A stretch of DNA of 64,000 nt from Tubulanus polymorphus (GCF_964204645.1 NC_134033.1:1756131-1820130), one strand, 5' to 3'. Positions 2 to 48,171 are shown, counted from the first letter of the stretch. Numbers and translations are program-made. The notes: generated by a model from the letters alone, not told the origin.

Positions 2-502
2 CCGTACATAACTACCTACAAGTCTAGGATCACGTATCCATTGTTATCCATGGGTAAGCTATACCAGTGGCGCGTTTGGCTGTCGGAAGTTGTATTCTTC
101 TTTTCGATTTCCATGTTTGTACCGATGGTTGTCCTGTTGGTGACCAATTCGATCCTAGTCGGCGTCGTAGTCGTCGAGAAAATTCGCAGACGATACATCA
201 CGGCCGCGGCGGAAGAATCGTTCGCGAAGGAGTGGCGAATTCTACGAATGACCTTGACCGTCGTTATGGCGTACGTGCTACTGGAATTCATGGCGTTAAT
301 CGATCGAATGTCTACATTTAAAATCATTCACATCTCGTATACAAAAATTGTAAGACCGCTTCTCATAAGGAAGATCGGCATAGCGCTATCAATAGTGGAT
401 TCTTCGGTGAATTTTCTACTGTACTGCACCACAAACCGACAATTCATTAAAAATACGAAAGCCTTATTTTCATCGGGGAAATCCTTTCAGCAAGCCTCCT
501 GA
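2..502 (+). CDS. Rhodopsin-like (class A) GPCR, FMRFamide/peptide-receptor-like; 3' portion only (TM5-TM7 + helix 8), 5' end outside the window
   Basis: Frame is open from base 2 to TGA at 502. It contains TM5-like FSISMFVPMVVLLVTNSILV, TM6-like ILRMTLTVVMAYVLLEF and TM7 ALSIVDSSVNFLLYC followed by NRQF (helix 8), typical of expanded invertebrate peptide/chemoreceptor GPCRs. Confidence 0.8.
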   Translation, partial: PYITTYKSRITYPLLSMGKLYQWRVWLSEVVFFFSISMFVPMVVLLVTNSILVGVVVVEKIRRRYITAAAEESFAKEWRILRMTLTVVMAYVLLEFMALIDRMSTFKIIHISYTKIVRPLLIRKIGIALSIVDSSVNFLLYCTTNRQFIKNTKALFSSGKSFQQAS

Positions 503-2818: not shown

Positions 2819-3120
2819 CAGGGCATCAGCCAATCTGACTGGTAAAACGACCAGTCTTAGGATTTAACGCCGGCTGCTCTGAATTTCTTGAATGATAATT
2901 TCAAACAAGACAAAACAGAAAAAAAAGTTTCTGTGTCTAAAGTCACCGGTAACAGTTATGAATTAGGCGACGCAAACTGCACGTGTCATTTGCAGAACTG
3001 GAACTAGCCCACACAGAAGCGTCACATGTACCGAAAACAATATACGGCCATTTTTTATCGTGTCATTTGTTGACGATCGTTACGACTCGAATATTAATCA
3101 GTTATCGACTCTCTTGTGTA

Positions 3121-3180
3121 TATAAACCCGCGACGAGCAGACGGATTCTGTATCGAAAAAGCGGCGTTAGGTGTTTTCAG
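3121..3180 (+). promoter_or_regulatory. TATA box and short non-coding first exon of Gly-rich gene 1
   Basis: TATAAA at 3121-3126; donor CAG|GTAAGC at 3180/3181; acceptor tttacAG at 3627, just before ATG 3630. All four paralogues share this layout. Confidence 0.6.
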
Positions 3181-3629
3181 GTAAGCACAATATATAGAGC
3201 GACACAAGTCAGATACATACGTATGTAGGCCTACGCTGGATGGCTCCATTCCGCATTGGATGCAAACCGGATCCAGGGTTCGAAAGTTGTGAGTTGAGTT
3301 TTGAGTCAGAGTTAACATTCAACTAAACTTTAGCCCTGATCTGAGGAACTGGAGGCCGGTTCTTTCACAGTCGTGAGTTTTGACTTGACTCACTGACAGA
3401 GTTATTAATTCACAACTGTGGAACTGGATCCTGGGCTTCGCAAAAAATTCGCAAATTCTAAGTAATCTATCGGGAGCGAATTCAAATTTAAAAGATTCAA
3501 TAATTCGGAGTTGAACAATTTTTTTCCGGTGAAATTAGCCGAATTTTATCGATATTATCATTGTATTCTGGAGTTTCCTATTCTTGTGAAATTCTCAGAT
3601 CTCGAATCGTTATTTTCTGTTTTACAGCA

Positions 3630-5035
3630 ATGAAATTAGCGATCTTCGTCTTAGGCCTGGTGTCCGTCACCAGCGCCTCATACTACGGTAAACCATTCAT
3701 CCCCTTTACTGAAATACTCATTTCATCAACATCAATTCATATTTCCTTACGAAGATCCTTTAATAATAATCATGCTCATATCACAGTTAGAATTTTTTAA
3801 ACATTATTTGTATTCAGGCTACAGCCCTGGTTACGGCGGTGCGTACGGTGGTAGTCAGTACGGATATGGAGGAGCAGGAGCTGGATATGGAGGTGCAGGA
3901 TATGGAGGAGGCGGATACGGAGGAGGTGGATACGGAGGAGCAGGATATGGAGGAGCAGGATATGGAGGAGCAGGATACGGAGGTTAGTTGCAAGCCCCTA
4001 CGAGCAAATTATCCTATTGATATCAAAAGATGGTTGCTTATATCGTGTCAAATAGATATGCCTTGTTTCTTATTTCCGGGGGATGGAATATTGGCAGAAA
4101 TAAAAAGAGGGCGATTAGTTCCAACTAAGCCCAATTGGCGATTTTAGAAATAAAAACTGAGAATTCGCTGGCTTGCTAAAGGGGTCTTTTACTGTTAATT
4201 TTGTTTCCAACTTCACAAGATCGGCCATCGATAGCCGGGCCACCGAAATTGGAGGAAACGAAATTTTCGAAGAATCTGATGATCCACCCAGAAACATTTG
4301 AGTACCATATGATTTGTTCCGTCAACCAATTTCCTAAACCTTTTTGAGATAACGGTCTTATATGAGCACAACATTGTTTCTTTTGTTGATTGACTGAACC
4401 ATAATGTTCCTATTTCAGGATATCCTGGGTACGGAAATGGTGGATACTACTATCCGGGAGGACGCGGTGGTGGTGCTTATGGCGGAAACTACGGAGGCCA
4501 AGGATCCCAGGGCGGCTACCAGAACAGTGGAGGTGGCGGCTACCAGGGAGCGGAAGCTCAAAGCCAATACGGCGGCATTGGAAACCAGAACCAAAACACC
4601 TACAATCAAGGTGGTGCCACTGGTGCTCAGAGTAACTACGGAGGAGTTCAATCGCACGGTGCTATGGCTGGCAACAGAAATAAACAAGGCTACGGCGCTA
4701 TGCACGGTCAGGGATCGAGCGGAGGATACCACAAGACTACTGACACCGGTTGGGGAAGCCAAGGATCCATCGCCACCAAAGGAGGATACGTCGACCAAAA
4801 CGCTTATGCCGGCAATAATGCTTACGGTGCTGGAGGTGGAAGCCAATCTCACGGATCTAGCGGTCACGCAGTCGGAGGCGGAAGCCAAAACAACTACGCC
4901 ATGGGAGGCACTTCGCAAACTCAAAACCAAGGAGGTTATACCGGAGGTCAGTCTGCAGGAACCGGTGCACAAGGCAGTGGTGGTGGTAGCTATCACGGTA
5001 CTAACTATGGTGCCACTCCTGGTTACTATGGATAA
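3630..5035 (+). CDS. Secreted Gly/Tyr/Gln/Asn-rich protein, paralogue 1 (279 aa; GGAGY repeats + conserved DTGW domain)
   Basis: join(3630..3687,3818..3982,4419..5035), GT-AG, both introns phase 1, 840 nt. Signal peptide MKLAIFVLGLVSVTSA, then SYYG, (GGAGY/GGGGY)n and the conserved domain, ending PGYYG*. AATAAA at 5232. Confidence 0.85.
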
Positions 5036-6062
5036 AAAGCGCCAGATTTTAGTAAGTAGCGATCAACAAGCAGTTTATCTAACTAACTCAATACCAGTGG
5101 GAGCATTTCTTAATCACTCGCCCTCGGTAGGTTATACATTACCTAGGCTATGATCCATTTCAGGAGTGAACGTTATCAAAGAAAAGACGAAACAGCCAAT
5201 TACGATTTCAAAAATTGTTATCTATCAAAAAAATAAAATTGTTGAACCGCAAAATATCTTCGTATTCATGTGGCTCGTATGTTCTTGGCCAAACTGATAC
5301 TTTCATTTAAAATATGGAAAATTCCGCCAGTCACGATATCTCAAGACGAAAGCGTCTCTGCCCATATCAATCCTGAAACCCCCTCGAAGCGGTCGCAGGT
5401 TGGACAGGCCAGGAACCTGTTAATCCCTTAGAGCTGTAAATGCTGTGGAGTGCAGGATCCTTAATAGTCTGGAGCCACTCTCGCGAACAGTCGATACTCT
5501 ATCACCATTCTTAGTTATTCGGAGCCATCCCCTTAGAATTTACGGTACACTATCAGCATTCCAGGTATACAAGTCTCCGCCTCACACATTTCGAATCGCA
5601 AATGGAATACAAACGCATTATTGACTGTCAAGATATCATGGCAAACACCGAAGAAGCTTAAACTACAGAAACAAAAAAATCAATGAAATTGAACGGTTAG
5701 AACAAACATTTCACACAACAGACTCATATAGGTTGTTTCTACCAGAAAATCATCGCCATCTTTGGATAATTGGAAGGCCGAGGTCCAGACGAAATAATGG
5801 CATTTCTCGAAAAGAGTAGCCACGTTAATGGCCTCAATTGGGATTGCATCCTCGGTTTAAAATTTTTCCGAAGAGATTCATCCTAAAAAGATGCAGTTTC
5901 CAAGAGGATGAGTGCCAAATTCACGCGGTTTAACAATTTTCATCTGGACGAAAAAGTGCCACCTCAATGGGAAAGCAGGGGTCCGAACCCAACCCCTGAG
6001 ACCACCCCCTAAATCCGCCCCTACAATATCCACGAACCATGAAGACTGGAACAGTGACCGTA

Positions 6063-6176
6063 TCTAAAACTAGGACCTAATCTACAACTGACCACCGATC
6101 TAAAACTAGGACCTAATCTACAACTGACCACCGATCTAAAACTAGGACCTAATCTACAACTGACCACCGATCTTAA
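6063..6176. repeat. 36-bp tandem repeat, ~3 copies
   Basis: tctaaaactaggacctaatctacaactgaccaccga at 6063, 6099, 6135. Confidence 0.85.
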
Positions 6177-6481
6177 ACTGTCCCCTTCGGTCGACATACT
6201 GTTTACCGAACGCCATTAATCCTTACACCACGTTACGTAAGCACGCACTTTTAGTAAACGACTTCTCGGAAACAACAACACGTTTCACTATAATAATTGC
6301 CAGTAGTAAATCTTACCCGGTTAGAACCTACATCTTACAACATGTGATATTGAAATGAACTAAGTGGAATACAAGCTGCACGCTCGCACCAGCCGAATGG
6401 AGAAAAACTAAAACTAAAATCCCTTTGATTTATTCCACATATTGAGGTCATCGTCGAGCACATAAAAAAGATTCATGTCCG

Positions 6482-6617
6482 AACGACCATTGTCTAGTGC
6501 TGTCGGTAACAGCCCTTTCACACAATGAATCAACGATGTTTATTGATGCGAAATTGTATAAATACCCAGTGTTTGTTTCATTAGACAGTGACTAAGCGCA
6601 CACTACAGATCGTATAG
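6482..6617 (+). promoter_or_regulatory. Promoter block, TATA box and non-coding exon 1 of Gly-rich gene 2
   Basis: 31-nt block 6482-6512 matches 10544-10574 at 30/31; TATAAAT at 6557; donor AG|GTAAGT at 6617/6618. Confidence 0.65.
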
Positions 6618-6941
6618 GTAAGTTTGTAACGCTTCTTCCGTCGGTTATCAAGGACATCATTAGGCTGATGATACCTTCTTGATATAAAAAGCTGGACTCA
6701 GTTCCATAGTTGTGGATTTAATTTGAAAATAAGCCAAGTTTTCGTCACGGTAATGTGGGTTCAATTCGTCCACAGTGTTATGGGTTCAATTTGGCTCTGG
6801 AACCTCATCCACAGTTGCGTGGGTTTAATTTGGTTCATTTATATTCCTTAACGAACTATTTGACGACTCAAACTCTGACACCGGTAGAAATGGGTTCTTA
6901 TGTACTGTTATTGTGCGCTGGATTTGTTTCAGTTTCGCAAG

Positions 6942-8470
6942 ATGAAGTTGGCCTTGCTACTCGCAGCCCTCGTGGCCGGAATCAGTGCATCATACTATGG
7001 TAAATGACGTTTAAGAAAAAAATGTTCATTCAGTAACAACCAAAACTAACGAGGAGGGTAATCCTCGTCATCTCCTCAACTTGATTAATGTTGTCGTGAC
7101 GGTTTCCATATCTAACGGTTGAACGTAGGTAGACAAATAGTACTTTGAGGGTTAACTTGATTTTTATCCAAACGTTCGGGCTTAAAGCTATTATTAACTT
7201 CATCGGGCATATCGGCATCGAATACGGTCAATGCAGAAATAAAAACGGTAATTGTAGGAAGTTGAGACTAGTTAGAGAATATTGAGTGGGCGGAGTAATT
7301 ATGAATGAATATTTGAAGTAGCTGTCTGTCCTTCAGATTAACTGAATCGATGCAAGGTTAACACAGCTCATGTACAACACACTCATCGTATCTAACATTG
7401 GAAATAAAGTGTGAAAATACAAGAATCCTAGATTGACTAATGCCCCATTTACCTCTCCGTGAAGACTATTGTTCATTGGTCATGTTTACTGTCAATAACT
7501 GAATATCCTTATTTTTGCAGGGGGAATGGGAGGTGGATATGGCGGAATGGGAGGTGGAATGGGCGGATACGGTGTAGGAGGGGGAATGGGCGGATATGGT
7601 GTAGGAGGTGGAATGGGCGGATACGGTGTAGGAGGTGGAATGGGCGGATACGGAGTGGGAGGTGGAATGGGAGGTGGATACGGAATAGGAGGTGGAATGG
7701 GCGGTGGATACGGAATGGGAGGTGGAATGGGCGGTGGATACGGAATGGGAGGTGTAGGAGGTATGGGAGGTATGGGTGGTGGATACGGCATGGGAGGTGT
7801 AGGAGCAGGAACTGGAGCAGCTGGAGCTGGTACTGGAGGATATGGAGTGGGAGGAATGGGAGGTGCTGGAGGATACGGAGGTGTGGGAGGTGGTCTGGTT
7901 GGCGGTGCTGGAGGAGGATCTTATGGAGGCCAAGGCAGTCAGGGTGGATTCACCCAATCAGGAGGTGGAGCTCAAGGCAGTGCTGGTGCCCAATCCCAAC
8001 ATGGCGGTGTCGGAAGCCAAGGCCAGGGTGGATTCAGCAACGGCGGCGCTCAAAGCGGCCAAAGCAACTTCGGAGGAGTCCAATCGCACGGAGCTATGGC
8101 CGGTAACAAAAATCGCCAAGGCTTCGGCATGATGACAGGTCAAGGATCAAGCGGAGGATTCCATAGAAAGAGTGATACCGGTTGGGGAAGCCAAGGATCT
8201 ATCGGCACCAAAGGAGGTTTCGTCGACCAAGCCGCTTATGCTGCTAATAATGCTCACGGTGCCGGAGGCGGAAGCCAAGCTCACGGATCTCACGGTCACG
8301 CAGTCGGAGGCGGAAGCCAAAACAACTACGCCATGGGAGGAACCTCGCAAACTCAAAACCAAGGAGGTTATACCGGAGGTCAAACTGCAGGAACTGGTGC
8401 ACAAGGCAGCGGCGGTGGTTCTTTCGGTGCTAATAACTTTGGCGCCACTGGTTACGGTTACGGCCGTTAA
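6942..8470 (+). CDS. Secreted Gly/Met/Tyr-rich protein, paralogue 2 (335 aa; GGGMGGYGV repeats + conserved DTGW domain)
   Basis: join(6942..6999,7521..8470), phase-1 GT-AG intron, 1008 nt. Signal peptide MKLALLLAALVAGISA, then SYYG; ends GYGYGR*. Confidence 0.88.
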
Positions 8471-9383
8471 TAAGTTATAAAACAAACGTGTAAGTACGAA
8501 AAACAACTAAACCACAAAAACCTCAGAATTTCATCATCCAAATTCTAATTGTTTTTATCTAACATCGACATCATTAAATTATCTAATGATTCTATAGATA
8601 CGTTAAAGGCTACTTTCATGAAAGTGCCTATAACATCACGATATGGCTAACTGCCTTCGTTTAAAAGAAACAGCAGCCTCTACCAAACTCCCAACTCCCT
8701 GATTGATTCATCTAATGATTTTAACGCACTCTTCCACAAAGGATGGTTGACTCTGATCGCCCCAAGGCATCAAGAACTGATCCCTTCCAAGTATCATATC
8801 ACGGCCAGTACTTGTGGAAACAAGACAAAAAGAAAACCAATTTGAAAATGCTAGAGCCTTCCATAAGAAAATTGCCATTTACGTCATTATCAAACTTCTT
8901 GCCTTTCTCCAAAAATATTGTTACCACCATAACTATGCCTATGACATCGTTAAATTGTCAGTAATTGCATATAACGAAATAACTCGGGCAGCCTCATATT
9001 TGATTATTCTCATGTGCCCTGTGTTAATCTCTTTTCCAGGGTTAGTACACTTTTGATTCTCACTTCTTTCTCAGCACGGACACTACTCCTTAGTTCCGTT
9101 ATCGTGATGCGTGATGCAGTGTGGACGTTTCAGTCGTCGAACGTTTTCAATTGTGCACTCTCTTTCTTTATCTTTGGTCGTCTCAGAATGAGATAAATAA
9201 AACAAGAATTTGAATTAAAAAAAACTACGACGATGATATTCAGTTTGTTCAGTTGTTTTGATTTTCTGATTAAGTGGTGATTCGGCTTGAGGAACATGGC
9301 GACGACGTTGGTTGTACAATTCAGGAGCTCGAAACATTGAACAGCAACTTGATGACCTCAAAGGAAGGACAATCAATAAGCCG

Positions 9384-9830
9384 GGGCCATTTGCAAAGGC
9401 AGCGTAACTTAAGACCGTGTCTCAACTCATTTTGGTTCTATAACCGATCTAACAACTTAAGACCAGTCTAAGCTCATTTTGGTTCTATAACCAATCTAGC
9501 AACTTAAGACCAGTCTCGGCTCATTTTGGTTCTATAACCAATCTAACAACTTAAGACCAGTCTAAGCTCATTTTGGTTCTATAACCAATCTAACAACTTA
9601 AGACCAGTCTCGCAGCTCATATTGGTTCTATTACCAATCTAACAAGTTGAGAATATAGCCCAAACAATTCATGGTTCTATAGCCCATAACAACTTGAGAC
9701 CATGTTGTGCTCAATTTGGTTTTATAGCCAATCTAACAACCTAAGTCCAGTCTTAAAACTCACATTATTAGTTCTATAGCCAATCGAACAACTTAAGACT
9801 ACCCTTCGATTTAAACCAAATTGGGCGTAA
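9384..9830. mobile_element. Family-A MITE with an internal ~45-bp tandem array
   Basis: Starts gggccatttgca; about 8 units of ctcattttggttctataaccaatctaacaacttaagaccagtctaag. Confidence 0.65.
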
Positions 9831-10543
9831 TTAACTGTTTTATTCAATCCATTTCGACCCAGACAAAGCAGAAATGAGCTTCTCAGAGCTTAAACTTCAG
9901 CGGTACTGAAAACATGCCATGCCTCGTCAGCCGACACTTTTGTTAGTGTTGCACTCATCAATTAGTCTTGTAGATAAAATGTACTAAAAATGTTTAAAAA
10001 AGAGGTAGAATATGTCCTAGCTAGACGTGAGCATACGTCGCTTGGAGTGCCATGTTGGAAATAAACTATAACACGCCATTCAAGCAAATCATCTTGTCTG
10101 TCTGTAATTCCCAAACCTGTTGAAGGTTTCAGACGACTATAGACCGAAGCCAGCCTCAAACTCACGCAGGCGTGGGATACTGTATAACGGCTTAACGAGC
10201 GAAACGAGTGCGGTAAAACAATCATCACTGAGTCGCGCGATTTCAATCAAGTCTTTCACTAAACTAAATGGTTACCACGATCCGAGTTGTTCTATAGGTT
10301 AACTATCTTATTTGACGCACAAGCTTTCGCTAGGTAGAGTACAGTAGCTTCATCTGGTGAATGAGTGAGTGTGATATTCTACGAATCTATGACAATGTTG
10401 CTATCATTGAGAAACAGATATTTCGAAGTAAAGCACTCATTCGAAAGTGAACTACTCCTTTAAAGCGTCTGCAGAGAAATGAAAGGGGAAGAATGTTGTG
10501 GATTTATTACGCAAACGGAGCCCATTAAAGAAATTCGTGCCCT

Positions 10544-10680
10544 AACGACCATTGTCTAGCGCTGTCGGTAACAGACCTTTCTACCATGAATCAAGGCAAT
10601 GTTTATAGGCGGCAAATCGTATAAATACGACACCTTGATTTTATCTCATAGTGACGAAGCGCGCACTTTACTGAACATAG
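10544..10680 (+). promoter_or_regulatory. Promoter block, TATA box and non-coding exon 1 of Gly-rich gene 3
   Basis: Conserved block 10544-10574; TATAAAT at 10620; donor AG|GTAAGT at 10680/10681. Confidence 0.65.
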
Positions 10681-11067
10681 GTAAGTTGGCAAAATCTTTT
10701 CTAAAGGTAAAAAAGTAATTAAGTCGAGGTCCTTTTGGAAACGCAATCAAAATCGCGGGGTGATGTTCTGGACCCAGTGTGTGGGTTTTATTTGACTCGG
10801 GATCCAGTTCCACAGTTGTGTGGGTTTTAATTTCACTCTAAATCCAATTCGACAGTTATGGAGATTTGGTTTGCCTCTGGACTCAGTTCCACAGTTGTAT
10901 GGGTGTAATTTCACTCTAGATCCAATTATATAGTTTTTCTGGGCTTAATTTGATTCCAGTTTATTTTGATTATTCATTCTTTTCCTAGTCGAACATTTCA
11001 AAGTCTGCTTGATGTTTAGTACGAATGTGTACTTTAAAAAGGTGCAATTTTGTTTCAGTTTCACAAG

Positions 11068-12274
11068 ATGAAGTTGGCCTTGCTACTCGCAGCCCTCGTG
11101 GTCGGTATAAATGCTTACTACGGTACATACTGAATCTATAATCAGTCTTGGTCACTCTTAGACTAATGTTACAATGAACTATGATGGATACGCTACATCG
11201 ATCCGTGACATTGATCCTTTTTAAAATGTGAATGCTAAAATGTATTTTCGTTATTTTTCTACAGGCTATGGCGGAATGGGAGGTGGATATGGCGGAATGG
11301 GAATGGGAGGTGGAATGGGAGGATACGGAGTAGGAGGTGGAATGGGAGGATATGGAGTTGGAGGTGGAGGAGGATACGGAATGGGAGGTGGAATGGGAGG
11401 ATATGGAGTCGGAGGTGGAGGAGGATACGGAGTAGGAGGTGGAATGGGAGGATATGGAGTTGGAGGTGGAGGAGGATACGGAATGGGAGGTGGAATGGGA
11501 GGATATGGAGGTGGAGGAGGATACGGAATGGGAGGTGGAATGGGAGTAGGATATGGAGTCGGAGGTGGAATGGGATACGGAATGGGTGGTCAAGGTGTTG
11601 GAGCAGCCACCGGAGCCTCTGGAGCCGGTGTTGGAGGTTATGGAGTTGGAGGTGCTGGAGGAGTTGGAGGTGTTGGAGGATATGGAGGTGTAGGAGGTGG
11701 TCTAAAGGGCGGTGCTGGAGGAGGAACTTATGCGGGTCAAGGTAGTCAGGGTGGATTCAACCAAGCTAATGCTGGAGCTTATAATGGCGCTGCTGCCCAA
11801 GCACAATATGGCGGCGTTGGAAACCAAGCCCAAAACACTTTCAATCAAGGTGGTGCCACTGGCGGCCAGACTAACTTTGGAGGAGTCCAATCGCACGCTG
11901 CCCAAGCTGGAAACAGCAATAAACAAGGCTACGGCATGATGACAGGTCAAGGATCAAGCGGAGGGTTCCACAAGACTACTGATACCGGTTGGGGAAGCCA
12001 AGGATCCATCGCCACCAAAGGAGGATTCGTCGACCAAAACGCGTATGCCGCTAATAACGCTCACGGTGCCGGAGGCGGAAGCCAATCTCACGGATCTCAC
12101 GGTCACTCAGTCGGAGGCGGAAGTCAAAACAACTACGCCATGGGAGGAACCCAACAAACTCAGAACCAAGGAGGTTATACCGGAGGTCATAGCTCTGGAG
12201 GTGGCGGACAAGGTAGTGGCAGTGGTTCTGTTGGTGGTACTAACCACGGTGCCACTGGTATATACGGCCGTTAA
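11068..12274 (+). CDS. Secreted Gly/Met/Tyr-rich protein, paralogue 3 (354 aa)
   Basis: join(11068..11122,11265..12274), phase-1 intron, 1065 nt. Signal peptide MKLALLLAALVVGINA, then YYG, alternating GGGMGGYGV / GGGGGYG(M/V) repeats and the conserved domain; ends GIYGR*. Confidence 0.88.
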
Positions 12275-13623
12275 TAAGTTGTAAACAAGCGTGTAAGTAA
12301 AAATCAAAACAACACAGACCTCAAAAACCTTATCCTCATAATATCCATTATCGTTATCTACAATATACAAGTTTTTCTTATCTTATTGCGAAATTATCCA
12401 ATCGTCTAGCATCTATGGACTCTTCGAAAGCAGTCAGTTTTTTTATATTCAAATGTGGAAACAAAAACAGAAAGGAAAGGAATTTGAAACGCCTTCTCGG
12501 AAGAATGGCTGTCTGCGTAATCAAACTGTCTTTTTACTTTTCCCAAGGAGATGGGTACCTCATTAACTATATGCCTATAACATGATTGACTTGCCATTGA
12601 TTTCATACGATCAAGTCACTTCCATTTCTCGACCTCTTCCGGCAACCGCCTCGTAATTTGCGTATTCTGATGTGCCGTGTGACTGTCTCCTTTCAGGGTC
12701 AATTAACAGATGTTCTCACTCCTCTCAACACGGACGACTTTCGTCAGGTCTGTTTGCATGATGTGTAATGCAGTTTGGAAGTTTCTGTTCTCATTAAAAT
12801 GTTCGATCGCGCGCTTTCTCTAACTATGGTCAAAAATGAGTAGAATAAACTTGAACGTAACAAACACGATGTATTTCGTTATTTTACTTTACTGTTGCCA
12901 ATGACTGAGAACCTAAATCGGATGTGGCGATGTATCTGTAGGATAGTCGAGCCTCCGGAGAGGGCATTGTTTGATCTAGGTGTACCTCCTCTGAGAGCGT
13001 GACTCTATGATCTATGCACACCTTCTCTGTAGACCTGCAGTAAAACATGAAAGGCGTCGTGGGTTGGGACCTGAAAATAGCGACGAATTCAGTGATTTTC
13101 CTGATGACCATAACCAAGTTTTACTGTAGGCAGTCACTGTGGGTTCTATGCGTACTTTCTGTACTAGTTGTGAGGACCATTATGCTAACGACTTTGTTCA
13201 AACGACGATCTACACAAAAATTGAGGTTATAGTCAATGTAAGTGAACCTCCTGGAGTATCATTTATGTCGGGTAATTCTACTAAATCGTTTTCTCCCCGA
13301 GAATGACTTCATCATTAGTCAATAATCGTCATTTTATTGGAACCGGAATGAGAAATGGTTGTCAATACGTAATGTGCAAAACATAATTCAAATCGGTTTA
13401 GTTCTATTGAATTGTGGTCGTTGATGATATATAGAAATATGTCGCAACAAGTTGCCTTTCGGCGTCATTTGTTTCTGACGACTTTAAAAATCCAAAAATA
13501 TTTCCAAAAATGTAATTTTCGATCGCATTTCGGTGTTGGCACCTGCGGTTTATGTTCTGCGCTGTTTCAGAAAACGGTCACATGGTACGATATAAATTAG
13601 ACGCCATTTGGAGCTGTGTTACG

Positions 13624-13727
13624 TATAAAAAGGCCAAGCGCACATCACCAATCAGCTCAAATTCAAAACAACAGTACGATCTAAGAAAGTTCCGAGAGTC
13701 TTGTTGGTGGTTGTCTTGCTGATCAAG
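13624..13727 (+). promoter_or_regulatory. TATA box and non-coding exon 1 of Gly-rich gene 4
   Basis: TATAAAA at 13624; donor AAG|GTGAGT at 13727/13728; acceptor ttttAG at 14168, just before ATG 14170. Confidence 0.6.
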
Positions 13728-14169
13728 GTGAGTGCATCCGTTTGCAACATCAGAGATCAAGACAAGCGTTCGGTTTTTGAAAAGTTGCTTCCACACTGTA
13801 AGCAACTTCGAGCAGCTTGTCACTTAAAGCACTGAGTGAATGCAACAGAACCACGCCTTCTATCCAATTTAGCTACTGGGCAAACATTGTCTACCTCGGA
13901 AAAAAAGTCCTAGTTAAGCTCGGAAATTAAGAAAGGAAGCTAGAAAATAATTTCGTTTTTGTTCGAATTTGCCCTACCCGAGTTAGGCGATGTTTGACTG
14001 TAGCTACTGATGACGAGTTTCCAAACGCATTCAACACAACCTCGATTGTCAAAACACCAAAAGCTATTACATCCAGATAATTGGGGATGAGTTTCTTTGA
14101 ATCCTTTAGGAGCTTTCCAAATTCGTTTCATTCATCCATACATTGACTACAATCTTCATACATTTTAGG

Positions 14170-15275
14170 ATGAAGTGTCTTAGTCTTCTTCTGATAGGTG
14201 TTGTTGGTAGCGTTTCGGGTAAGTCGTACGCTTTTTCAAATTCTTGTATCGAGAACGAAGTCCTTTACATTTAGGAGGCAATGAATTCAAGGGAACAGTT
14301 TAGGTTCCGTAACCAATCTAACTTGGGACTGCAGCGCAAACACAGTATGGACGTATTGCTAGACGTAGATTAGGTCTGTCTAATATCATGTGATTCTAGA
14401 TCCTTAACCTATTGTAGGTTCCCTTTTCTGAACCCTAACATCTCAGGCTTAACATCTAAAAATGTTTTGCAATTCACTAACAAATACGTGTAGAAAGAAT
14501 TCCTATAAACCAAAGAACGTCTATGAAGGTTTTTCTGTGAGTCCCCACACGGAACCACCATTTGTTCAAATAGTGTAGGGTATCTATCTACTGCGTCAAT
14601 TTTCTGACTTTCTTTATTCAAATTTCTGTTGTAGCGTACTACGGGTATACGTATCCAACTTACGCTGGATACTACGGAAATCCTGGAAGAGGTGGTGGCG
14701 CCTACGGAGGTACTTACGGAGGTCAAGGAAGTCAAGGTGCTTACTCTAAAGGTGGCGAAGCGGGTTACAGCGACGCTGCCGCTCAAAGCCAATATGGCGG
14801 CATTGGAAATCAAGCTCAAAACACCTACAATCAAGGCGGTGCTACTGGTGCTCAGAGTAACTACGGAGGAGTCCAATCGCAAGGTGCTATGGCCGGTAAC
14901 AGCAATAAACAAGGTTTCGGCGCTATGGAAGGTCAAGGGTCGAGCGGAGGATACCACAAGACTTCTGATACCGGTTGGGGAACTCAAGGATCCATCAGCT
15001 CCGTAGGAGGCTTCATCGATCAAAACGCATATGCCGGTAACAACGCTTACGGTGCCGGAGGTGGTGGTCAATCTCACGGATCTCACGGTCACTCAGTCGG
15101 AGGTGGAAGCCAAAATAACTACGCCATGGGTGGAGTCCAACAATCCCAACAACAAGGAGGTTATGCTGGAGGCCAAAGCTCAGGAGGTGGCAGACATGGC
15201 GCGAGTAACAGTGCTAATGGTGGAGTGAATTGGGGACTTATGGGCGCTGGATTTGGCTGGCCGTATGGAAGATAA
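14170..15275 (+). CDS. Secreted Gly/Tyr/Gln/Asn-rich protein, paralogue 4 (229 aa; no long repeat block)
   Basis: join(14170..14218,14635..15275), phase-1 intron, 690 nt. Signal peptide MKCLSLLLIGVVGSVSA, then YYGYTYPTYAGYYGNPGRGGG and the conserved domain; ends GFGWPYGR*. Confidence 0.85.
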
Positions 15276-17490: not shown

Positions 17491-17800
17491 TCCACACTCT
17501 ACATGTGTTCAGTACTTCAACCGGGACAATATTTTTGAAAATGAACTACAAACACCTGACATTAGACTTTTTATCAGCATCCTTTCAAAAACTGATCATC
17601 CACACTTCACATGTGTTCAGTGCTTCACCTGAGACAATCTTTTTGAAAATGAACTACAAACACCAGACATTAGACATTTTATCAGCACACTTTCAAAAAC
17701 TCATCATCCACACTTCACATGTGTTCAGTGCTTCACCTGAGTAAATCTTTTTGAAAATGAACTACAAACACCTGACATTAAACATTTTATCAGCACATTT
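17491..17800. repeat. 108-bp tandem repeat, ~3 copies (probable SHIP 3' UTR)
   Basis: Units start tccacact at 17491, 17599, 17707. Confidence 0.85.
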
Positions 17801-18516
17801 TTCCAGGACTGGGTTAACTTAGATGGGCCCTAAAAACCGCTAGCCATCACGCCTATTTCTCACTCTGGTGTTCTTGAGACAAGCATTCGTCAGCTGTCTA
17901 CGAAATTGCATTTGTTAATTGTTAACTCGAAAACGAACTGTTTTGGGTCAATATATGCAGTATATATAAATCTATAAAATTTCCATATAAAATATTGGAA
18001 TAATCATCATCAATATATTAGCACCAATATTATATACTCTTTCAGAAAGTATCAGGTATAGATATACAAAATATATATATATTTATGAATAATTTAATCA
18101 TGAATCTCACATGTGCATGTTTCATAATCAGTGTTGTGCTCGAAGAACGTATCACGGTGGACTTAACACAAATATAGAAACGATTTTTAGACATTTCTCA
18201 AAGCGAGCATTGCATAGGAAAATTTTTCAATGAGGGATCGAAGGGAACCCCTCGTTCTTCCAACTCTAATCCACGCGATAAACCATCATCGCTCCGATTG
18301 CCAGCCCCGCCAGAAAAACCGATCGGGTGCAAGCACAGAGTTTACTGTATCTTTTATGTCTAGTTCTTTGATGAGTCTTCAGTATCTTTAACTTATGTTG
18401 CACTGTCTAGAATAACATATCGTTTGGTTATTAAAATTCCGACTGAAACTGGGCCCGGATCGTCAAGGCGTCTAGAACAATCGGCAATTTTTTAGTTTCT
18501 GAATTTTTCTCATGTA

Positions 18517-21500
18517 TTACGTTTCGTCTGTCGATAAATCTGGCAGCGCCGACTTGCGCTGCGCCGGAGTCACCCGTCTCGGAAGAATAGGTGGCACTGT
18601 CAGTCCGTCCGGGGTCGGATTACGCGCTTTACGCGGTAACTGCGGGCAAGGACGGTTCGGCGGTGGAATTGAATTGTCGCCCGCGGATCCGCCCGCCGGG
18701 TTACCGCCGGTGAACATTGTTGTATGACGGCGACTGTCGGACGTCCTGCGGTTGCTGTCGACGCTCTGATACAGTGAATTTTCGACAGAATTCAGATTTT
18801 GGTCGTGATCGGTTTTCACGCATTCTAAAAGTAAAGAAATTGTTGTTAAAAACGCCTAGAATCCCTGACGCCTAATTTCGAAAAATATTCTTAAGGGTTT
18901 GTGTTGGCTTAATTTCTTTCTGGGGAACTGGATCCTAAGTCAAATTAAAACCACACAACTGTGGAACTGGGTTCAGAGTCAAATTTAACCCACATAACTA
19001 TGGAACTGGGTTCAGAGTCAAATTTAACCCACACAACTGTGGAACTGGGTTTAGAGTCAAATTAAACCCACACAACTGTGGAACTGGATCCAGAGTCAAA
19101 TTAAACCCACACAACTGTCGAACTGGATCCAGGGGCAACATTTAACCCATACAACTGTGAAACTGGATCCAGAGTCAAATTAAACCCACACAACTGTCGA
19201 ACTGGATCCAGAGTCAAATTAAACCCACACAACTGTGGAGCTGGATCCAGAGTCAAATTAAACCCACACAACTGTGGATCTAGATTCAGAGTCAAATTAA
19301 ATCCAAGTGTGGAACTGGATGAATACGTACCATAAATGCGTTGACTGCGTTGTTTGGTCAATAATTTGCTGCTAGCGCCCTCTATAGGAGCCGTTAGATG
19401 GATACTTCCTCGTATAACGCCCGATTCTACGGCTTGATGAGTCAATATATATTTAAACGGCTGCGGAAATGTACTGAGCACTGGTTTCAAAGCCAACACG
19501 CATTCACCTACAGAAAATAGCAGACGATCATCAAAGATCGATAAAATTCGTCCGTATGATCTGAAACTTTACACCAAATTTTACAGTCATGGAAACATGA
19601 TTGTTTAACTTGATTTATTTCAATAAATTGAGTCTCTTTTTTCTGATTCAATTTGATTAAAAGAAGTCCTTTTGGGCAATTCTTCAATACAATGGATTTA
19701 AAAGGCGATGTTTTAGTTCAGCAGCTCATTTTTGCTGGTTTGGTTAAGACCTGAGGTACGTACAACCAAAACTGACTGAGGTTTGGCATCTGACATGAAG
19801 ATTAAATAGACATTAAATCCAATGGGTCCTGGAGGAAACTGGGCCTACATCCGTTAGGTCCTAAAGGATGGACTGGGTTCTGGAGGCAACCGAAATCCAC
19901 AAAACTAACCGTACGACTCGTCCCCTTCGACCGATTTCACCATTATCAGAATATGTTGATCCTCGAGATACGACCAGTCGGCGACGATCGGCTCGAGTTG
20001 CGGCAGGAAATTACCGGACCATTTCGGACGACAGCTCGTCTCCTTCTGCTGCGCCTGCAGGAACGTCATGTTCGGTTTACTTTTAACCGGCGCTGAAATC
20101 ATACGAGGAAAAATAGAGAAATCATGAAAAAAAATGTTTGAAATAATATTGCCTGGGTTTCACAAAAAGGTTTAACCTATTCAGTGCGTCTACACCGCAG
20201 TGCAGTGTATGAATCAGTGAGGGACTTTGCTAGTACACTGCATCGTGGTGTACTGATGTTATCAGTTTCTATCTCTATTGAAAGATGGTAGCACCTGTCA
20301 AACATAGTGAAATATTACACAGCACCGTGGTGTAGTGCAATGCCTGTTATTCCACACACTGGGATGGAATTTTTTCTTTTCAATTTCAAATATCTCCAGC
20401 ACTTTCAGGTATTAATGAGTCAGCACTGAAAGCGTTAACTCTCAAATCGATTTGATTTTTAGTTTGCTATTACATACCTTCCAAACAGAGTGAATGGAAT
20501 TCTAACAGGAATGTCGATTTAGAAGTTGTTATCATCTGCAAAAACGAATGAATTACAGAAAAGATTTGAACATCGATGAAACGCTCTGAGCTCTGAGTCC
20601 GTGTTGTAAAGATACAATCCTGCACTAAGAATATGTTTCCTTCAGCTAATTCAGTTTATTCGATGTTTTGACTTTATCGTAAAAGTCATCTTCAGGAATA
20701 CCATCCTCAATATTCCCCAAGATGAATTAATCATTGAATGTACTATAGTAAACAGCATGTTTACACAAGATGCACATGTACTATAGTGCATGTTCATGTA
20801 TGTATAGTATATACATGTACATGTACTAAAGTACATATGCATGTTATATATGCTATAGCACATACGTGTACATGAACTATAACACAAGTGGATGTATATA
20901 ACATGCCCATGTACTATAGCGCATGTACATGTATGTACTATAGCATATATAACATGCACATGCACTGGAGTACAAGTACACGTAGTGCATAACATCCACA
21001 TGTATTATAGTACATGTACATGTATGTACTATAGCATGTACATGTACTATAGTACATGTACATGTGTGTACTATAGCATATATAGCATGCACATGTACTA
21101 TAGTGCGTGTACATGTATATGAAACACTAACCTCTGCGTCGATGTCGCCGAACACAATTTTCAGACCGTGACGCATTGAATCGTCTTTCTCCGACGGCGA
21201 CGTGGAGGAGACGTACTGCGTGGCGATCGCGACGTTAAAACTCGAGAAAACCGGTTTATGATCGCTGGATAGAATCTTATCGGAGCAGCCGTACGACGTG
21301 TTCACCACGTACGTATCCGGATACGACTTCCATAGAACTCGATCGCACCACGACGGTACATTGATACGCACCTTCAAATATACAAACAATAACAAGATAA
21401 TGATGGATTCCCCCTATGACATCACCATCAACGTATTAACTATTTAGCAGCAATGAATCAAGTGAACTGGTTATTTGATGGTGTTATAGGTGGATTGATG

Positions 21501-24500
21501 GAGGCAGCCATCTTCTCTCCAAGTTAACTTTCTATAGATAATGCCATCAGGCAAGTTTATGAGGTCATTATTGCCATCAGGCAAGTTCATGATGTCATAG
21601 GAGGATTTATGGAAATAGCCACGTTTGCTAGGAGAGTATAGATTGAATCATAAGATAATCTAATGTCATAAAGTGATTTATGGAAACAGCCATCTTGAAC
21701 TGTCCATGGATAATATAAAAAAGTTCTTGAAGGTAGCCATGTTTTTAGAAAGGTATATCATCCAATTCATTTTGATTTTTCTTTAATAAATAGACTCAGA
21801 TTTTGCACAGAGATTTTAGGGTTCACTTACACCGGTTTTCTTAAATTTTTGCCAGACGTATTTCGTGCCGTTGCCTTTTTCCAAACGATACGTCGGTGGA
21901 AACAGAATGTGTTCTTCATCTATACATGCACAATGTGTTTATTCCACGACAGCAGACGGAATAAATTCAATAAATATACGAAAACATGCTGTCAGTATTT
22001 TCAAATATTTGAATATGATTTCAGTTAGAATTTCATGCGAGGAATTTTTACGAGAGCCTGATTTCATAGACTTGATATCAAAGTAACCCTTAGGGGTAAA
22101 TCCTCAACCTAGGTGACAACGAACATTGAAAACACAGTAAACCTAGCCTTTCTCCAACGCAGCCATCTCGGACATTCAACTACCGGAAACTCTGACAAAA
22201 TGTAGATCATTTTTGTACCTGGCTGACATATTTTTCTTAGCCTTAACTCAAGACTTTCGCTTGCCCCAGTAAAATTTTGCCGGGCCCAGTTTGTCCGAGT
22301 TAGGTGAGGTTTACTGTAGTAATAACTGACTAATTCAAAATGTTCCCAGGGATTCTTTTGCCCAAAAATCTATGAAACTCAGCCAGAGGAATCATCACAT
22401 AAAATATCGATTTGAGGAAGGAAAATGCTTGGATCACAGTGAAAATTAATATAAATGTATTAATACATAAATAAGAAATTGCGTAAAACTGATGTATTAT
22501 TTTGGGGAGGAGACATTCTCGAAATCGGCGAAAATAAAAGACCGGCGATAAATTACCGAATAGATAAAACGCTTTCTTTTCCCGCTGCGTTTTGAGCAGT
22601 TGATCTTTCGCCAGCAACGGTTCGAAGTCTTTGTGCTCGATCTTTTTCAAAATTACCTGAAAACCCGGGAAAAAAATATGGATACAAAATAGTTTACGCA
22701 GGGGAGCACGGCAAATACGACTGTGGAACGAGGCCTAGTAGCTCATTTTTAGAAACCAGGCTAAGCTCATTCAGGTTTTAATTTAGAGGGGCCAATCTAT
22801 GGGGAGGCGGTCCAAAAATTGGACACCTTTTACTTAGAAAATATCGAAATTTCTTCAATGTTAACGAAAAGGCCCAAGACTGGTCTGATGACTTCCTTCA
22901 GTGAAGGCTAAGTCTTAACCAATTTTGGTCCCGTAAACAATCTAACAACTAAGACCAGTAGAAATGTAGGCGAAACAATGCCTCATTATTTATTACATGT
23001 GGATCGTCATCCAATCTATAGTTGAGATCTCCGAACCAGAAAACGTGATGGAACTGCTTCGTCAAGTCGAATTGACCGCTATGGACCTTCAGTTTCTGTG
23101 ACAGACAACGTAGAATATCCTTAAAATTCTGGATCCTCCTGGAAAATAAACAGCAAAAGCGAATAATATCAGATTCATCGATTCATTCGAAGATTATACT
23201 GAATACCTTAACATAATAAAAATCTAGTCATCCAGTAGACATGAGTCCAGGGTTCAGTTCCATAGTTAGGGCTCAGACTTAGACTGTTCTAAGACCAACT
23301 TAGTTCTATAGCCAGTCTAACAACTTAAGATCAGTCTTAAGATTTAAGACCGCTTTCGGTATAAAGTCTTGACTATGAAACCAGCCCCTGGGACTGCAGT
23401 TTCTCAAAATTTGGTTAAAAGTTAACTGTTGGACAAATCCCATTGTGAAATTTGAAATTACCATGGTATTTGTAAACTAAATTAGTCAATTTAGTCAACT
23501 GTAACCAACTTTCGAACAACCGACGAGTTAATATTCATTGATCAAACTTCGTAGGTTCAAGTAAGATCCGAATCTTCAATGTTTAAACGGGACTCATAGA
23601 TTTATACGCTTTTTTAATTGATACCTCGCATTCTTTTCTGCGCCCGACGTCAAGTGGCAGTTCACGAAACAAAACGAAGTTCCACAGAATGAGAAAGTAA
23701 TCGCTACAGCTCCTTTATTGCCTGCAACCGTAAACAAAGAGAGAACTTTCAAATTCCTAAACCTCTCTTCTGTTCTTAGAATCAAAAGGTACCAATCCTG
23801 GGGTCTAGATATACATGCAAGCCACTGAAATAAGCTGAGTTCCACTAAATTCAGGAAATGCATATAAATATAATAATATCAATATAAAACTTTATTTTAA
23901 TATGCGAATTCAATGATTTGAATATGCACATTCAAATATTTGAATATGTAAATTCAAAGATATGCAAATTCGAAGATTTCAATATGCAAATTCAACGATT
24001 TGAATATGTAAATTCAAAGATATGCAAATTCGAAGATTTCAATATGCAAATTCAACGATTTGAACATGCAAAATTCAATAATTCGTATAATACTCACCCA
24101 AGGTGTTAGCGATGCCCGTTTTAACCGATGCGCTTTCAATATGGCTGATTTTATTTTTGTGTTCGAGTCGCGCGAGAATCACGAGTCGAATGTCCCACAA
24201 TACGTGCGAAACGACCTAAAAATAAACCGCAAGAGGCAAGTGCTCATCAAAAACCAGGATGGAACCACTTTTATCTGACTTGCTTTTACCCTGACTATTC
24301 CCTGACATGCACGTTGTTTTCCCTGAATTGATCTGTTAAGAATCCGATCAATTAACACATTCAAATACATAAGACATAGACCGAAACTGTTTGATCTTAC
24401 ACGCGATCTAACAATCTCAACAAATTTCCCTGACTATTCCCTGACATGCTTGTTGTTTTCCCTGACTCGATCTGCTAAGAATCCGATCAATTAACACAGT

Positions 24501-27500
24501 CAAATACGTAAAAAAATAGACGGAGACTGATTGATTTTACATGCGATCTAGCTGTCTCAACATAGTTCACCGAATTTCCCTGATTTTTAGCTTATCAACA
24601 AAAAGTTTCTTAACGAAAACTTACGATATAAAAGTCGGAGAGGAATAGGCCTTCGAGTGAATTTTTTAAGCGCGACGCCCATTCTTTTTCCGTAAGCGCC
24701 GACTCCTGGAAAACCGCAAAAACAAGATTTCAATTCTTTTAATATTGATAATCGATAAGATGAATTCACAAGGGTCGATTTAGGACACGTGAGTATACCT
24801 GAGTGCCGATGATGTAAATGTCGTGCGAGATTTGCAGCAGGCAATGGTCTCGCGTTTTACCGGTTCCTTGAGATTTGAGCCACGTCGACAGGTTCCATTC
24901 CGGTTGACTATCAGCTGAAACGATGATAGGCATCGTTCAAATTTCACAAAAACGGTCACGGGCTGCAGTTGCTCAAAAGATTTTCGCCGAACAATTAGCT
25001 ATTTATCACCACCGAACTCTGACCACTCACCCATATTCCAGGTTCCGATGAATAGTGATATCGTGCCGATGTCAGTCGGCGACGATGAGTGCATGTTTTT
25101 CATCTGCTGCGCGAGTTGACAGAACAGCTCCCTCTGGCGAATGTCTTCGAAAACGTACGTCTCCTTTTGTTGACCTTCGATGAAAATGTCCAACTTGCAA
25201 TTGTTCGCCATATGTTTGACGAGCTGTTCAACTGAAAACAGAAAAACATGGCTTCCTCCATAAATCCTCCAATGACATCATAAGATTTACGATCTACAAA
25301 AGTCTGTCTGCCTCGATAAAACCCCCCAATGACATCATCAGATTTCCATAAACCCTCCAAGAAAAGATGGCTGCCTCCAAAAATCCCCCTATAGCACCAT
25401 GAAATTAGCTACTACCTATTTGATCTATAGACCCTCAACAAAAGGTGCCTGCCTCCATAAATTCTTCTGTGACCTGATCAATTGTTCAGTGATTAATTGG
25501 AAGATTAATAACTCAAAAGCTTAATTACTGTTACTTAATGTTAATTTGATGATGTCATAGGGTGATTTCACGGAGGTGGCCATCCCGTGTATATGCGACT
25601 TACTTTTATCGTGTAGGAATGTGTTACGAGAATCTAACAATTCTGTGTGAGGTTTGACGGCGAACAATTTCCCACCTTGCAAATCAATCGTCAACGTGAT
25701 TGCCTTCTGCTGCATCAACGATCCAATGACCTTCACCTTGATGTTATATAATAGCTATATTGTTGTATATTGTTTTGAAAAAAGCTTACCATAGATAAGC
25801 CATATGATACTGTTTTTCATCATCCATTTCATAGTCATCAGGGCCCAGTTGCACAGTCGTGACTTAAGTCCAAAAGTGGTCTTAAATCTTAAGACTGGTC
25901 TTAAGTTGTTAGATTGGCTATAGAACTAAGTTGGTCTAAGACTGGTCTTAAGTCTAAGCCATGACTATGCAACCGGCCCCTGGGCTCATAGTCCACTCTG
26001 TGTACAGAGCTACAGCCTTCAGGCTCTGGACGGGTCCTTCATGAGTTCATCTCAGTATCTTGGAATATTAGTGATTTGATTCATATTTGTAAATTCCAAG
26101 TAAAAAACGTCGTCCTTGTTTTAGTGTTATACGTACGTTGAACGATTTCTCCGGAATCGATGAACGTGGTTTCATCGACGGGTTCCTCGGAACGTTTTTC
26201 ATACTCGACGAAGTCTCCGCCGATTGACTCCTCATTGTCGTCGGCGATGATGCCCCCGCATTTTGAGGCCTCACTTTGTTGACTAAATCCGAGATACAGG
26301 TATTTGCCTGAAAATTTAAACATGAAAAAAATTGTTTTTAAGCCGTCATTCTATTTTCAAGTGGTGGTGATGTGAAAATTCATGGAAGATTCCGACCTAA
26401 GTGTGTTGAATAACGGGCACACCGCTACAGTGCATCTGCACTGCGGTGCGGTGTATCATTAGTTACTCATATCTAACTGTGTTCGACAGGTGCTGCCATC
26501 TTTCAATAGAGATGATAATAACATCAATACTAATAAGATGAATACACCACGGTGCAGTGTACTAGAAAATTACATCACAGATTTATACACCGCACTGCTG
26601 TGTAGACACACTGAAAGGGTTAATTTATTTTAATCATCATCATTTCAGTTTCTTATTTTTCTTTTAAAGCAGACGTATTTTTTGAATACGAACCAATTTT
26701 TCGACGGTTTGAATTTTTTTCCGAACTTCCTCGAATTTTTTGGATAAATCTTCGATCGTCATTTCATCCATTTGAGTTTCATTCTGATATTACAAAAAAA
26801 AAAAACATGTAAATAGATGAGTCCAAATGTCCGTATGAGCATGAAAGTTTACGACCCATGTACTTAGACATACAACATGTTCATGTAAATTGAACACATG
26901 TACGCACATGTAGAAACAGAGACAACTTATACAGGTACATTATATGGAGAAAAGATGTACAGAAATACACACAACATGCACATGTTTATAAACATGTAAC
27001 ATGTAAATGTTAACAGACATGTAATTTACATATTTATAGATAGATGACATGCACATGATTATAAACATAACATGCAAATGTTTAAAGAAAGACTGATTAC
27101 ATGAGCATGTTTATAAAGACAGATGACATGTACATGTTTAAGGACAGATGATAAGCACATATTTTCAGGGGAGATGACATACACATATTTTCAGACAGAT
27201 GACATGCACATGTTCATAGATGGATAACATGTACATGTTAATGATCGCACTGACCTCGTGAGAAGAAGGTGAAGTCGGTGAATTCTGATTGGTCGAGAAT
27301 AGATTACAACACAGTTCTAGTTTACTCATGTAGTCGGTTAAACTGCGGTGAACGGGTCTCGCCGCGTACGCGAGCAGACGGCGTATTTCCGTCTGGCTGG
27401 AATCATCACCGTCCCTCGAACCGCCGCGCTCCGTGTACTGACGCAACGCGTTCATGAAATCACCGTCGATACTAAAACAACGATAATCATAACTGTTTAT

Positions 27501-39816: not shown

Positions 39817-40378
39817 TTTATCGCGAGTTAAGACCCGAAGATTGCGAAAATTGAGCTTTTAGAGTTTTTATGCCCCTATAGACGAGAAAATCAACTTTGA
39901 GGCGAAGCGGTTTAGATTTTTTATTCCGAAGATATGATCAACGACCTTGAGATTTACGGCGAAGAGATGGCCGTATTTCTACTAGGAAAAGAATAGGATG
40001 TCTTAAATAACCTAGGAATCGTAATATCATTTTAAATTTATTTTCACGGAAAAGCGTAACATTATTACAAGTTAGAAAATATATAAATTTACAAAATAAA
40101 TCGCTGCAACGCTGTTAGTGTTGGTGCGGTAGATTTGAGTGAGGAACTGACGATGGCCAAAAATCAAGATCACATCTCCTCGAAATGATACCATGTAAAT
40201 TACGTAAGAAGCAATGAATTAAATTTTCAGGCATCTATATGCAAGAAAAAAATTAGTTTAGGTTGCTTGAAAAGAAACAATAAATCGCATTGAATGGGAT
40301 TCGAACCCACATTCAGCGACCAACATTAATTCAAATTTAGAATTTATTGACTCTTCATTAGCACCTGACGTTGCGAAA
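39817..40378. promoter_or_regulatory. Bidirectional promoter region PCID2(-)/TXNDC17(+)
   Basis: Start codons are 562 bp apart, head-to-head; YY1-like GATGGC motifs near 39966 and 40152. Confidence 0.5.
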
Positions 40379-47476: not shown

Positions 47477-48171
47477 ATCGAGAGCGTTCAAATCAAGCGC
47501 TGAGAAAAAATATCAGTTAGCTGTAACGAAGCATTTATGTATATAGTTGAAAATAAAACATTTGTATAAAATGATCTTATAGAATTGTTTGAAAATTTGT
47601 ACGGGCTGAAAGGTTTTATGGTTGATATTGACCCTCCCCGATTAGGAGGGGCATTCTTTATAAGTTGCCTACCCTACACATGGTTTGTAGCTAGTCTATT
47701 AAGAGCTACTTTTCGCGAGAAAGTGTTATTTTTTTTACTTGAACAAGTTTTTGAAAATGTCACATTCGTAATTCTGATACTTAGTGTTGATCAAATAATC
47801 AAAAGCTAAGGACACTGATCACTTCTGGGCAATTGATTCGTCCTAGCTCTTGAAACAGCATAGATATACATGTACTGTCAAAATGATACGTCAAATTTTT
47901 ACCCGTCAAAGTTACACTTTAAAAATGACCCTTCAACTCTGCGTAAAAATGCATTTCAAAAGATCATATTTGGCGCGTCGAATCCGATCTTGGATTTACT
48001 ATCAGAACCGAGGTCATCATCGTGGATATTCTGTCAAAAGACTGTATTCATTTGATGCTACAAAATTGATATTGTAGATATTCTGTCACTGGTGAAGTTC
48101 CCAACCCATGTGAAGTGTGGACACACGTGAAATGGAAGAATGATGTCTCCTGTGTGAGTTACATATTCCTA

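Follow-up and report, generated by a model that had tools for sequence, protein, structure and literature searches.

A candidate silk-like family of predicted secreted Gly-rich proteins with a core of conserved length in Tubulanus polymorphus

Four same-strand genes, here numbered g1 to g4, are located near the start of a 64,000-nucleotide stretch of the Tubulanus polymorphus genome (GCF_964204645.1 NC_134033.1:1756131-1820130; hereafter the window, with positions counted from its first letter). They belong to a family of 15 genes which we regard, with somewhat more confidence than doubt, as a lineage-restricted family of silk-like structural proteins, in which a low-complexity assembly core of locked length is combined with variable elastic or cross-linking spacers. 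The gene models, the leader peptides, the size of the family, purifying selection, a core free of insertions and deletions and the lack of a detected relative are directly supported. McDougall, Woodcroft and Degnan (2016) defined silk-like structural proteins by predicted secretion and by a Gly content of 25% or more over an 80-residue window, a criterion which returned almost only material proteins when applied to a silkworm test set (PMC4944945). The products of g1-g4 display both properties: the maximum Gly content of a window is 0.35-0.71, 98-100% of all 80-residue windows have a Gly content of at least 0.25, and the leaders, judged by reading, predict secretion. The family is considered to be a new addition to the wide group of silk-like structural proteins. 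As read from the translated genes, its members lack Cys, contain little Pro, range from mildly to strongly basic and are rich in Gly, Tyr, Gln and Asn; they are predicted to be secreted.

A gene family of two related types

Reading of the sequence and translation of long open reading frames yielded four intact genes within positions 3119-15275. Each of them begins with a TATA box and a short non-coding exon that stops at a GT donor, followed by a leader exon and, at the end, a large last exon. The leader exon ends with (S)YY and one nucleotide of a split Gly or Ala codon, resulting in a phase-1 intron with a GT donor. The leaders begin with MKLA or MKCL, continue with a hydrophobic core and end with SA/SYY, NA/YY or VSA/YY; signal peptides were assigned by reading, as M-K-(L/C) followed by a hydrophobic stretch and a small-x-small motif at positions -3 to -1. 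Four same-strand paralogues with this layout, including the TATA boxes and splice phases, had been described in a first-pass annotation made from the sequence alone, as had the succession of signal peptide, (S)YYG, variable Gly/Tyr(/Met) block and conserved core in the proteins, and both descriptions hold for g1-g4. Polyadenylation signals (AATAAA or ATTAAA) occur 100-330 nt past the stop codon in g1, g2 and g4, and the first one in g3 at about 520 nt. The copies are considered real and not an artefact of assembly, since contigs of a DNA sequencing run (X1) agree with the assembly in the stretches they cover, with no differences over 3100-8309 and a single one in the last piece, 8381-8600. At the protein level, the last exons of g2-g4 are 72-77% identical to that of g1 (73-79% for the cores alone). 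A profile built from the four cores recovered each of them in the genome at E values of 1e-83 to 1e-87, which places their paralogy far beyond chance.

Profile searches of the 268-Mb assembly revealed a total of 15 family members, seven of type A and eight of type B, all on a single contig (C9). The four-core profile identified as type A, in addition to g1-g4, a copy termed A0 and a divergent copy, A00, which are located 2-5 kb upstream of the window and share the strand of g1-g4, and a further copy, Ad, at a distance of 1.2 Mb. Type-B copies were recovered with a profile of their tail; five reside in a cluster, one lies 5 kb from Ad and two are found elsewhere on the contig. In these two outlying copies the core is split by an intron, and in one of them the match is interrupted by a TGA in frame. 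Six-frame inspection of the upstream 40 kb located the five clustered type-B genes at C9:1726230-1746804 on the minus strand, upstream of the type-A genes, so that five B and six A genes face each other head-to-head at the main locus. The cluster of four genes proposed earlier is therefore real, but it belongs to a larger cluster, which numbers at least 11 genes and extends over about 45 kb. A second, smaller locus (C9:576300-582323, minus strand) is made up of one A-type and one B-type gene 5 kb apart; thus, the two types co-occur at both loci. The most divergent A-type gene (C9:1750901-1751425 and downstream) shares 47% core identity with g1 and carries an NYGN-type repeat block which is positioned C-terminal to the core and not before it.

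The type-B proteins are strongly basic and rich in Asn, Arg and Phe. The clustered genes encode GGGGGYGAG- or GGGMGGGYGGG-type repeats followed by the tail, which comprises exactly 186 residues in five out of five and ends with Tyr-Tyr, Trp-Tyr or Tyr-Ala. A relationship between types A and B is indicated by a match between their profiles (hhalign probability 92.9%, E 3.7e-7, 114 gap-free columns), by the same gene layout and by a gap-free alignment with shared aromatic columns. Accordingly, a type-B gene 27 kb upstream possesses a TATA box, a non-coding exon, a leader exon ending with AA/SYY plus one nucleotide, and a phase-1 intron, after which the repeats begin. Within an alignment of 13 sequences the A-to-B core identity is 27-32% without any internal gaps, and ten aromatic columns are common to both types (P = 5e-5 against random placement).

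The ratio of nonsynonymous to synonymous substitutions (dN/dS, Nei-Gojobori) among the six typical A copies was 0.26-0.38 at a dS of 0.44-0.94; dS was mostly saturated in comparisons that involved A00. Pairs of type B mostly gave 0.26-0.46, and the three youngest copies 0.63-0.82 at a dS of 0.11-0.17. Judged by these ratios, the family members are old duplicates that have been held under purifying selection. Conservation is also seen in front of the genes: g2 and g3 share 79% identity over the 158 bp that lead up to the TATA box, compared to 81% for the coding core and about 65% for the introns, and there is no alignable sequence between the two farther upstream. A proximal promoter which is as conserved as the coding core points to a promoter that has been maintained. 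Immediately before the TATA box, a nearly identical block of some 40 bp (g2, 6480-6519; g3, 10541-10579) may be regarded as a candidate shared cis-regulatory element; it has a partial match in g4 and none in g1. The locus occurs in no RNA run that we found, as would be expected if the genes were silent or decaying lineage-specific duplicates, or if they encoded non-secreted proteins. However, intact reading frames, splice sites and phases in four out of four genes, dN/dS values well under 1 at high dS, the conserved proximal promoter of g2 and g3, and leaders of the typical hydrophobic kind, in which positions -1 and -3 are occupied by small residues, all argue against this explanation, which we consider very improbable.

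A core of fixed length and its variable spacers

The conserved domain proposed by the first-pass annotation is real, but its length of 176 residues was too short: judged against the type-B tails, the core starts about 12 residues farther upstream and comprises about 186-198 residues. Type-A cores are composed of about 31-36% Gly, 11% Gln, 6-8% Asn and 8-10% aromatic residues. In line with the absence of Cys and the scarcity of charged residues noted earlier, they contain no Cys, 0-2 Pro and 7-11 Asp/Glu/Lys/Arg per about 193 residues; the isoelectric point (pI) of the core is 8.1-9.7 in type A and 9.8-10.7 in type B. Aromatic residues occur every 6-13 positions, and a single invariant Trp is aligned between the two types. 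At conserved aromatic columns, Phe is present in g2 and g3 where g1, g4, A0 and Ad carry Tyr, which suggests that what counts in the core is the stacking of the rings and not the hydroxyl group. An arrangement of the aromatic residues in mirror symmetry about the central Trp (a 'giant beta-hairpin') was considered and rejected, as the best centre gave three pairs where 2.6 were expected (P = 0.58).

While the spacers vary widely, the length of the core is fixed, with no residues gained or lost. Unchanged length is unusual for a sequence of such low-complexity appearance and argues for a length-critical role. It also bears on the possibility that the proteins serve as a gel, glue or lubricant with no structural function, as components of sticky proboscis or locomotory mucus which would condense with polyanions (acidic mucins) and yield no durable solid. 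The cores are net positive, are predicted to be disordered and resemble phase-separating low-complexity domains in composition, all of which would suit such a gel; however, strict conservation of length is unexpected for a mere sticker-and-spacer gel former, and we consider this explanation unlikely.

The spacers consist of tandem repeats which, according to Tandem Repeats Finder, are built from a 15-nt unit (7.2 copies, GGAGY type) in g1 and from 27-nt units (6.9 and 10.6 copies, GGGMGGYGV-like) in g2 and g3. The repeats of g2 and g3 share an exon with the core; the block is nearly missing from g4, and in g1 it forms a separate exon of 165 nt with phase 1 on both sides, so that its gain, loss or skipping would keep the frame. 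Across the family, the length of the spacer ranges from almost nothing to about 250 residues. Spacers of the GGxGY type are found in g1, A0 and Ad, those of the Met type in g2 and g3; Met-containing Gly/Tyr repeats are present in both subfamilies, namely in the type-B gene B1 as well as in the type-A genes g2 and g3. The earlier proposal of interchangeable spacers thus holds insofar as they vary, but since the spacer type mostly tracks the gene tree, spacers appear to be inherited and not freely interchanged, the occurrence of the Met type in both subfamilies notwithstanding. Most of the oxidisable Tyr is located in the spacers.

The searches for relatives used single exons, core profiles or family alignments as queries against collections of mostly microbial and metagenomic proteins, and homologues in unannotated animal genomes may thus have escaped them. 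The four last exons matched no Pfam-A family at E <= 1 by hmmscan, including attacin, chorion, spidroin termini, chitin-binding cuticle domains and RRM. Neither the g1 exon nor the 13-sequence alignment of both types had a match among 5.8 billion word-indexed proteins. The A-core profile alone, run exhaustively with HMMER against 1.84 billion representatives, gave no hit at E <= 0.001, a search in which the composition filter may mask weak relatives, and a sequence search of the PDB returned nothing at E <= 1. In the ESM Atlas, the best scores of type A, 0.76-0.79, were obtained with clusters of arthropod proteins labelled hypothetical or 'spidroin-1-like'; these scores fall short of the useful range and reflect composition only, and type B had no usable match. 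The exact product of the g2 open reading frame is not on record. The first-pass annotation had not recognised the shared domain and had suggested a homology search with the domain alone; a search of this kind with the A-core profile met no characterised family, and no relative was recovered from Pfam, the PDB, the two large protein collections and the ESM Atlas. Within the reach of these searches, the family would therefore be one without a detected relative, so far found only in this genome. AlphaFold2, supplied with the family alignment, gave a mean predicted local distance difference test score (pLDDT) of 36.7 (A core) and 32.7 (B core), pointing to disorder and no fold, as is usual for predictions on silk-like low-complexity proteins. 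A complex prediction with four copies of the g1 core returned no answer and counts neither way.

A possible material-forming role and its alternatives

What we infer for this family of putative silk-like proteins is that they are secreted in vivo, that they assemble and become cross-linked, and what kind of material they build. The secreted cores might associate via their regularly spaced aromatic residues and via Gln/Asn/Gly backbone contacts, giving rise to a condensate that would mature to a solid with cross-beta-like or some other order. Elasticity would be set by the Gly-rich spacers (Met/Gly), which would also provide the Tyr that is cross-linked by oxidation. What results could be an extracellular material of the worm such as a tube or mucous sheath, pseudocnidae (extrusive secretory bodies), an egg envelope or a matrix. 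The structural compounds of pseudocnidae have not yet been characterised (PMC7897414). Expanding elastomer-like repeats next to a core whose length is kept suggest a sequence-defined assembly step within apparently disordered sequence. It might further be speculated that the core is a new assembly module, disordered when alone, which upon assembly adopts a length-critical cross-beta, beta-solenoid or polyglycine-II packing with the conserved aromatic and Gly columns arranged round the single invariant Trp, and which forms, together with the basic B partner, the matrix of a ribbon-worm-specific secretion (pseudocnida or tubulanid tube); this more specific scenario is put forward with considerable reserve.

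Several known systems resemble the family in part. Silk-like structural proteins such as the shematrins and KRMPs of pearl oysters share with it a leader, windows of at least 25% Gly, low complexity, predicted disorder and an organization in lineage-specific tandem families with variable Gly/Tyr repeats. They differ in that the repeats of the present family, whose material role is a putative one, are joined to a non-repetitive core of conserved length. Shematrins combine Gly/Tyr repeats with a basic RKKKY-like C-terminus, which is not present in the A or B proteins. Abductin, the elastomer of the scallop hinge ligament, is a secreted protein, as is predicted here, and its GGMGG-type Gly/Met repeats are similar to those of g2, g3 and B1. 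However, the abductin decapeptide is of the Gly-Met-Phe type with Phe, Asn and Ala, whereas the GGGMGGYGV repeats carry Tyr and Val instead; abductin is also not known to have a comparable conserved core, and no match indicating a relationship was obtained at E <= 0.001-0.01 in two large protein collections. The GGAGY and GGGGY pentapeptides of g1, A0 and Ad are reminiscent of lamprin, insect chorion and some Gly-rich spidroin and cuticle proteins, but the Pfam domains of chorion, spidroin and cuticle proteins are not matched here at E <= 1. Similarly, the cement proteins Pc-1 and Pc-2 of the sandcastle worm, an animal that builds tubes, are secreted, basic and rich in Gly and Tyr; no homology to them was detected, and type A differs from them by its low Lys content.

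The prion-like domains of the FUS/hnRNPA type resemble the cores in composition (Gly/Ser/Tyr/Gln/Asn for type A, Gly/Asn/Phe/Tyr/Arg for type B), in the aromatic spacing of 6-13 positions and in predicted disorder. By analogy, they may provide a plausible model for condensation and cross-beta contacts of the core. In contrast to the present family with its signal peptides and fixed core length, these domains are intracellular, linked to RNA-binding domains and tolerant of insertions and deletions. The resemblance is thus one of composition only, as no RRM or other Pfam domain is found in the family.

Several observations weigh against a material-forming role. Ribbon worms are not known to possess a cuticle, nor Tubulanus a stylet, so that few tough materials come into question. 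Neither a fold nor self-association could be predicted for the core, and no tyrosinase, peroxidase or laccase was seen by eye in six-frame pieces of the window and 10 kb upstream, a survey that did not include a Pfam scan of the pieces. All three sequencing runs found to hold the locus are DNA-like, with contigs that cross introns and intergenic DNA, and there is no RNA run among them. Finally, the criterion for silk-like proteins elsewhere also catches some immune Gly-rich families (PMC4944945). Since the definition takes in the present family, but also extends to such immune proteins, we rate a material-forming role only a little better than even.

The immune families recovered by the same criterion favour another explanation, according to which the proteins are soluble, cationic, defensive or antimicrobial Gly-rich components of epidermal mucus, acting in an attacin- or gloverin-like or Gly/His-rich manner, and do not bear load. 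The basic cores (up to pI 10.7 in type B), the secretory leaders and the tandem cluster would all be consistent with this role, as would the many unannotated secreted proteins in nemertean mucus proteomes (PMC12846013). A further point in its favour is provided by the C-termini, which read YYG, YGR or FGR in type A and GGYY or GGWY in type B: an aromatic-Gly(-Arg) end such as that of type A would permit C-terminal amidation, although the evidence for this is weak because the proteins hold 30% Gly. On the other hand, the proteins are large for such a function (about 230-450 residues), they possess long Tyr/Gly/Met repeat blocks as found in elastomers and matrices, selection on the core is purifying and not diversifying, and attacin and other Pfam families remain unmatched at E <= 1. 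A defensive role is therefore deemed quite improbable, and we continue to favour structural, silk-like proteins. Silks, elastomers, glues and biomineral frameworks are built from secreted Gly-rich proteins, and each new family has offered design rules. As the secretions of ribbon worms are almost unknown at the molecular level, the 15 genes provide concrete candidates for study.

Gene models and other features of the window

The exons and associated signals of the four genes are compiled in Table 1.

Table 1. Features of g1-g4, with positions counted from the first nucleotide of the window
Gene	Feature	Position	Strand	Details
g1	TATA box (3119-3126) and 5' non-coding exon	3119-3180	+	GT donor 3181; transcription start inferred; read from sequence
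g1	Signal-peptide exon	3628-3687	+	ATG 3630; MKLAIFVLGLVSVTSA/SYY + 1 nt; phase-1 donor
g1	Repeat exon, 165 nt	3818-3982	+	phase 1 on both sides; GGAGY-type pentapeptide repeats
g1	Core exon and stop	4419-5035	+	core about 4454-5032; AATAAA 5232
g2	TATA box (6557-6564) and non-coding exon 1	6557-6617	+	donor 6618
g2	Signal-peptide exon	6933-6999	+	ATG 6942; MKLALLLAALVAGISA/SYY + 1 nt
g2	Last exon	7521-8470	+	GGGMGGYGV-type repeats about 7523-7885; core 7886-8467; YGR, stop; ATTAAA 8573
g3	TATA box (10620-10627) and non-coding exon 1	10620-10680	+	donor 10681
g3	Signal-peptide exon	11059-11122	+	ATG 11068; MKLALLLAALVVGINA/YY + 1 nt
g3	Last exon	11265-12274	+	Met/Gly/Tyr repeats about 11267-11692; core 11693-12271; YGR, stop
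g4	TATA box (13624-13631) and non-coding exon 1	13624-13727	+	donor 13728
g4	Signal-peptide exon	14169-14218	+	ATG 14170; MKCLSLLLIGVVGSVS + split Ala codon
g4	Last exon	14635-15275	+	short Tyr-rich linker; core 14679-15272; YGR, stop; AATAAA 15604

A satellite-like unit of 39 bp (CTGTGGAACTGGATCCAGAGTCAAATTAAACCCACACAA and variants) resides in intron 1 of g1, g2 and g3 (3284-3467, about 6700-6850 and 10778-10927, respectively) and forms an array of 9.9 copies at 18920-19305. Word depth in the DNA run X1 is 4788 at 3284-3467, compared to about 29 in the neighbouring sequence, identifying the unit as a very high-copy repeat of the genome. Further tandem repeats are located between genes, with units of 36 bp (3.4 copies, 6057-6179), 47 bp (8.2 copies, 9406-9799) and 108 bp (2.9 copies, 17491-17801). 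The window as a whole gave no Rfam family at gathering score.

At the left edge, an open reading frame (2-499, plus strand) enters the window which by eye resembles an intronless G-protein-coupled receptor of the rhodopsin type, of which it would represent the C-terminal half. Exons of neighbouring genes, likewise judged by eye, are inositol polyphosphate 5-phosphatase-like (20880-25277, minus strand), thioredoxin-fold with a CPDC motif (40271-40552, plus strand), replication factor C small-subunit (44711-45103, plus strand), RING-H2 (51990-55483, minus strand) and TPR (60483-61558, plus strand); none of these exons of housekeeping type resembles a cross-linking enzyme. Two overlapping long open reading frames at 48086-48844 on the minus strand consist of a proline-rich repeat (..PFSLDPAPLQPGPCT..) and probably represent tandemly repeated DNA and not a gene.

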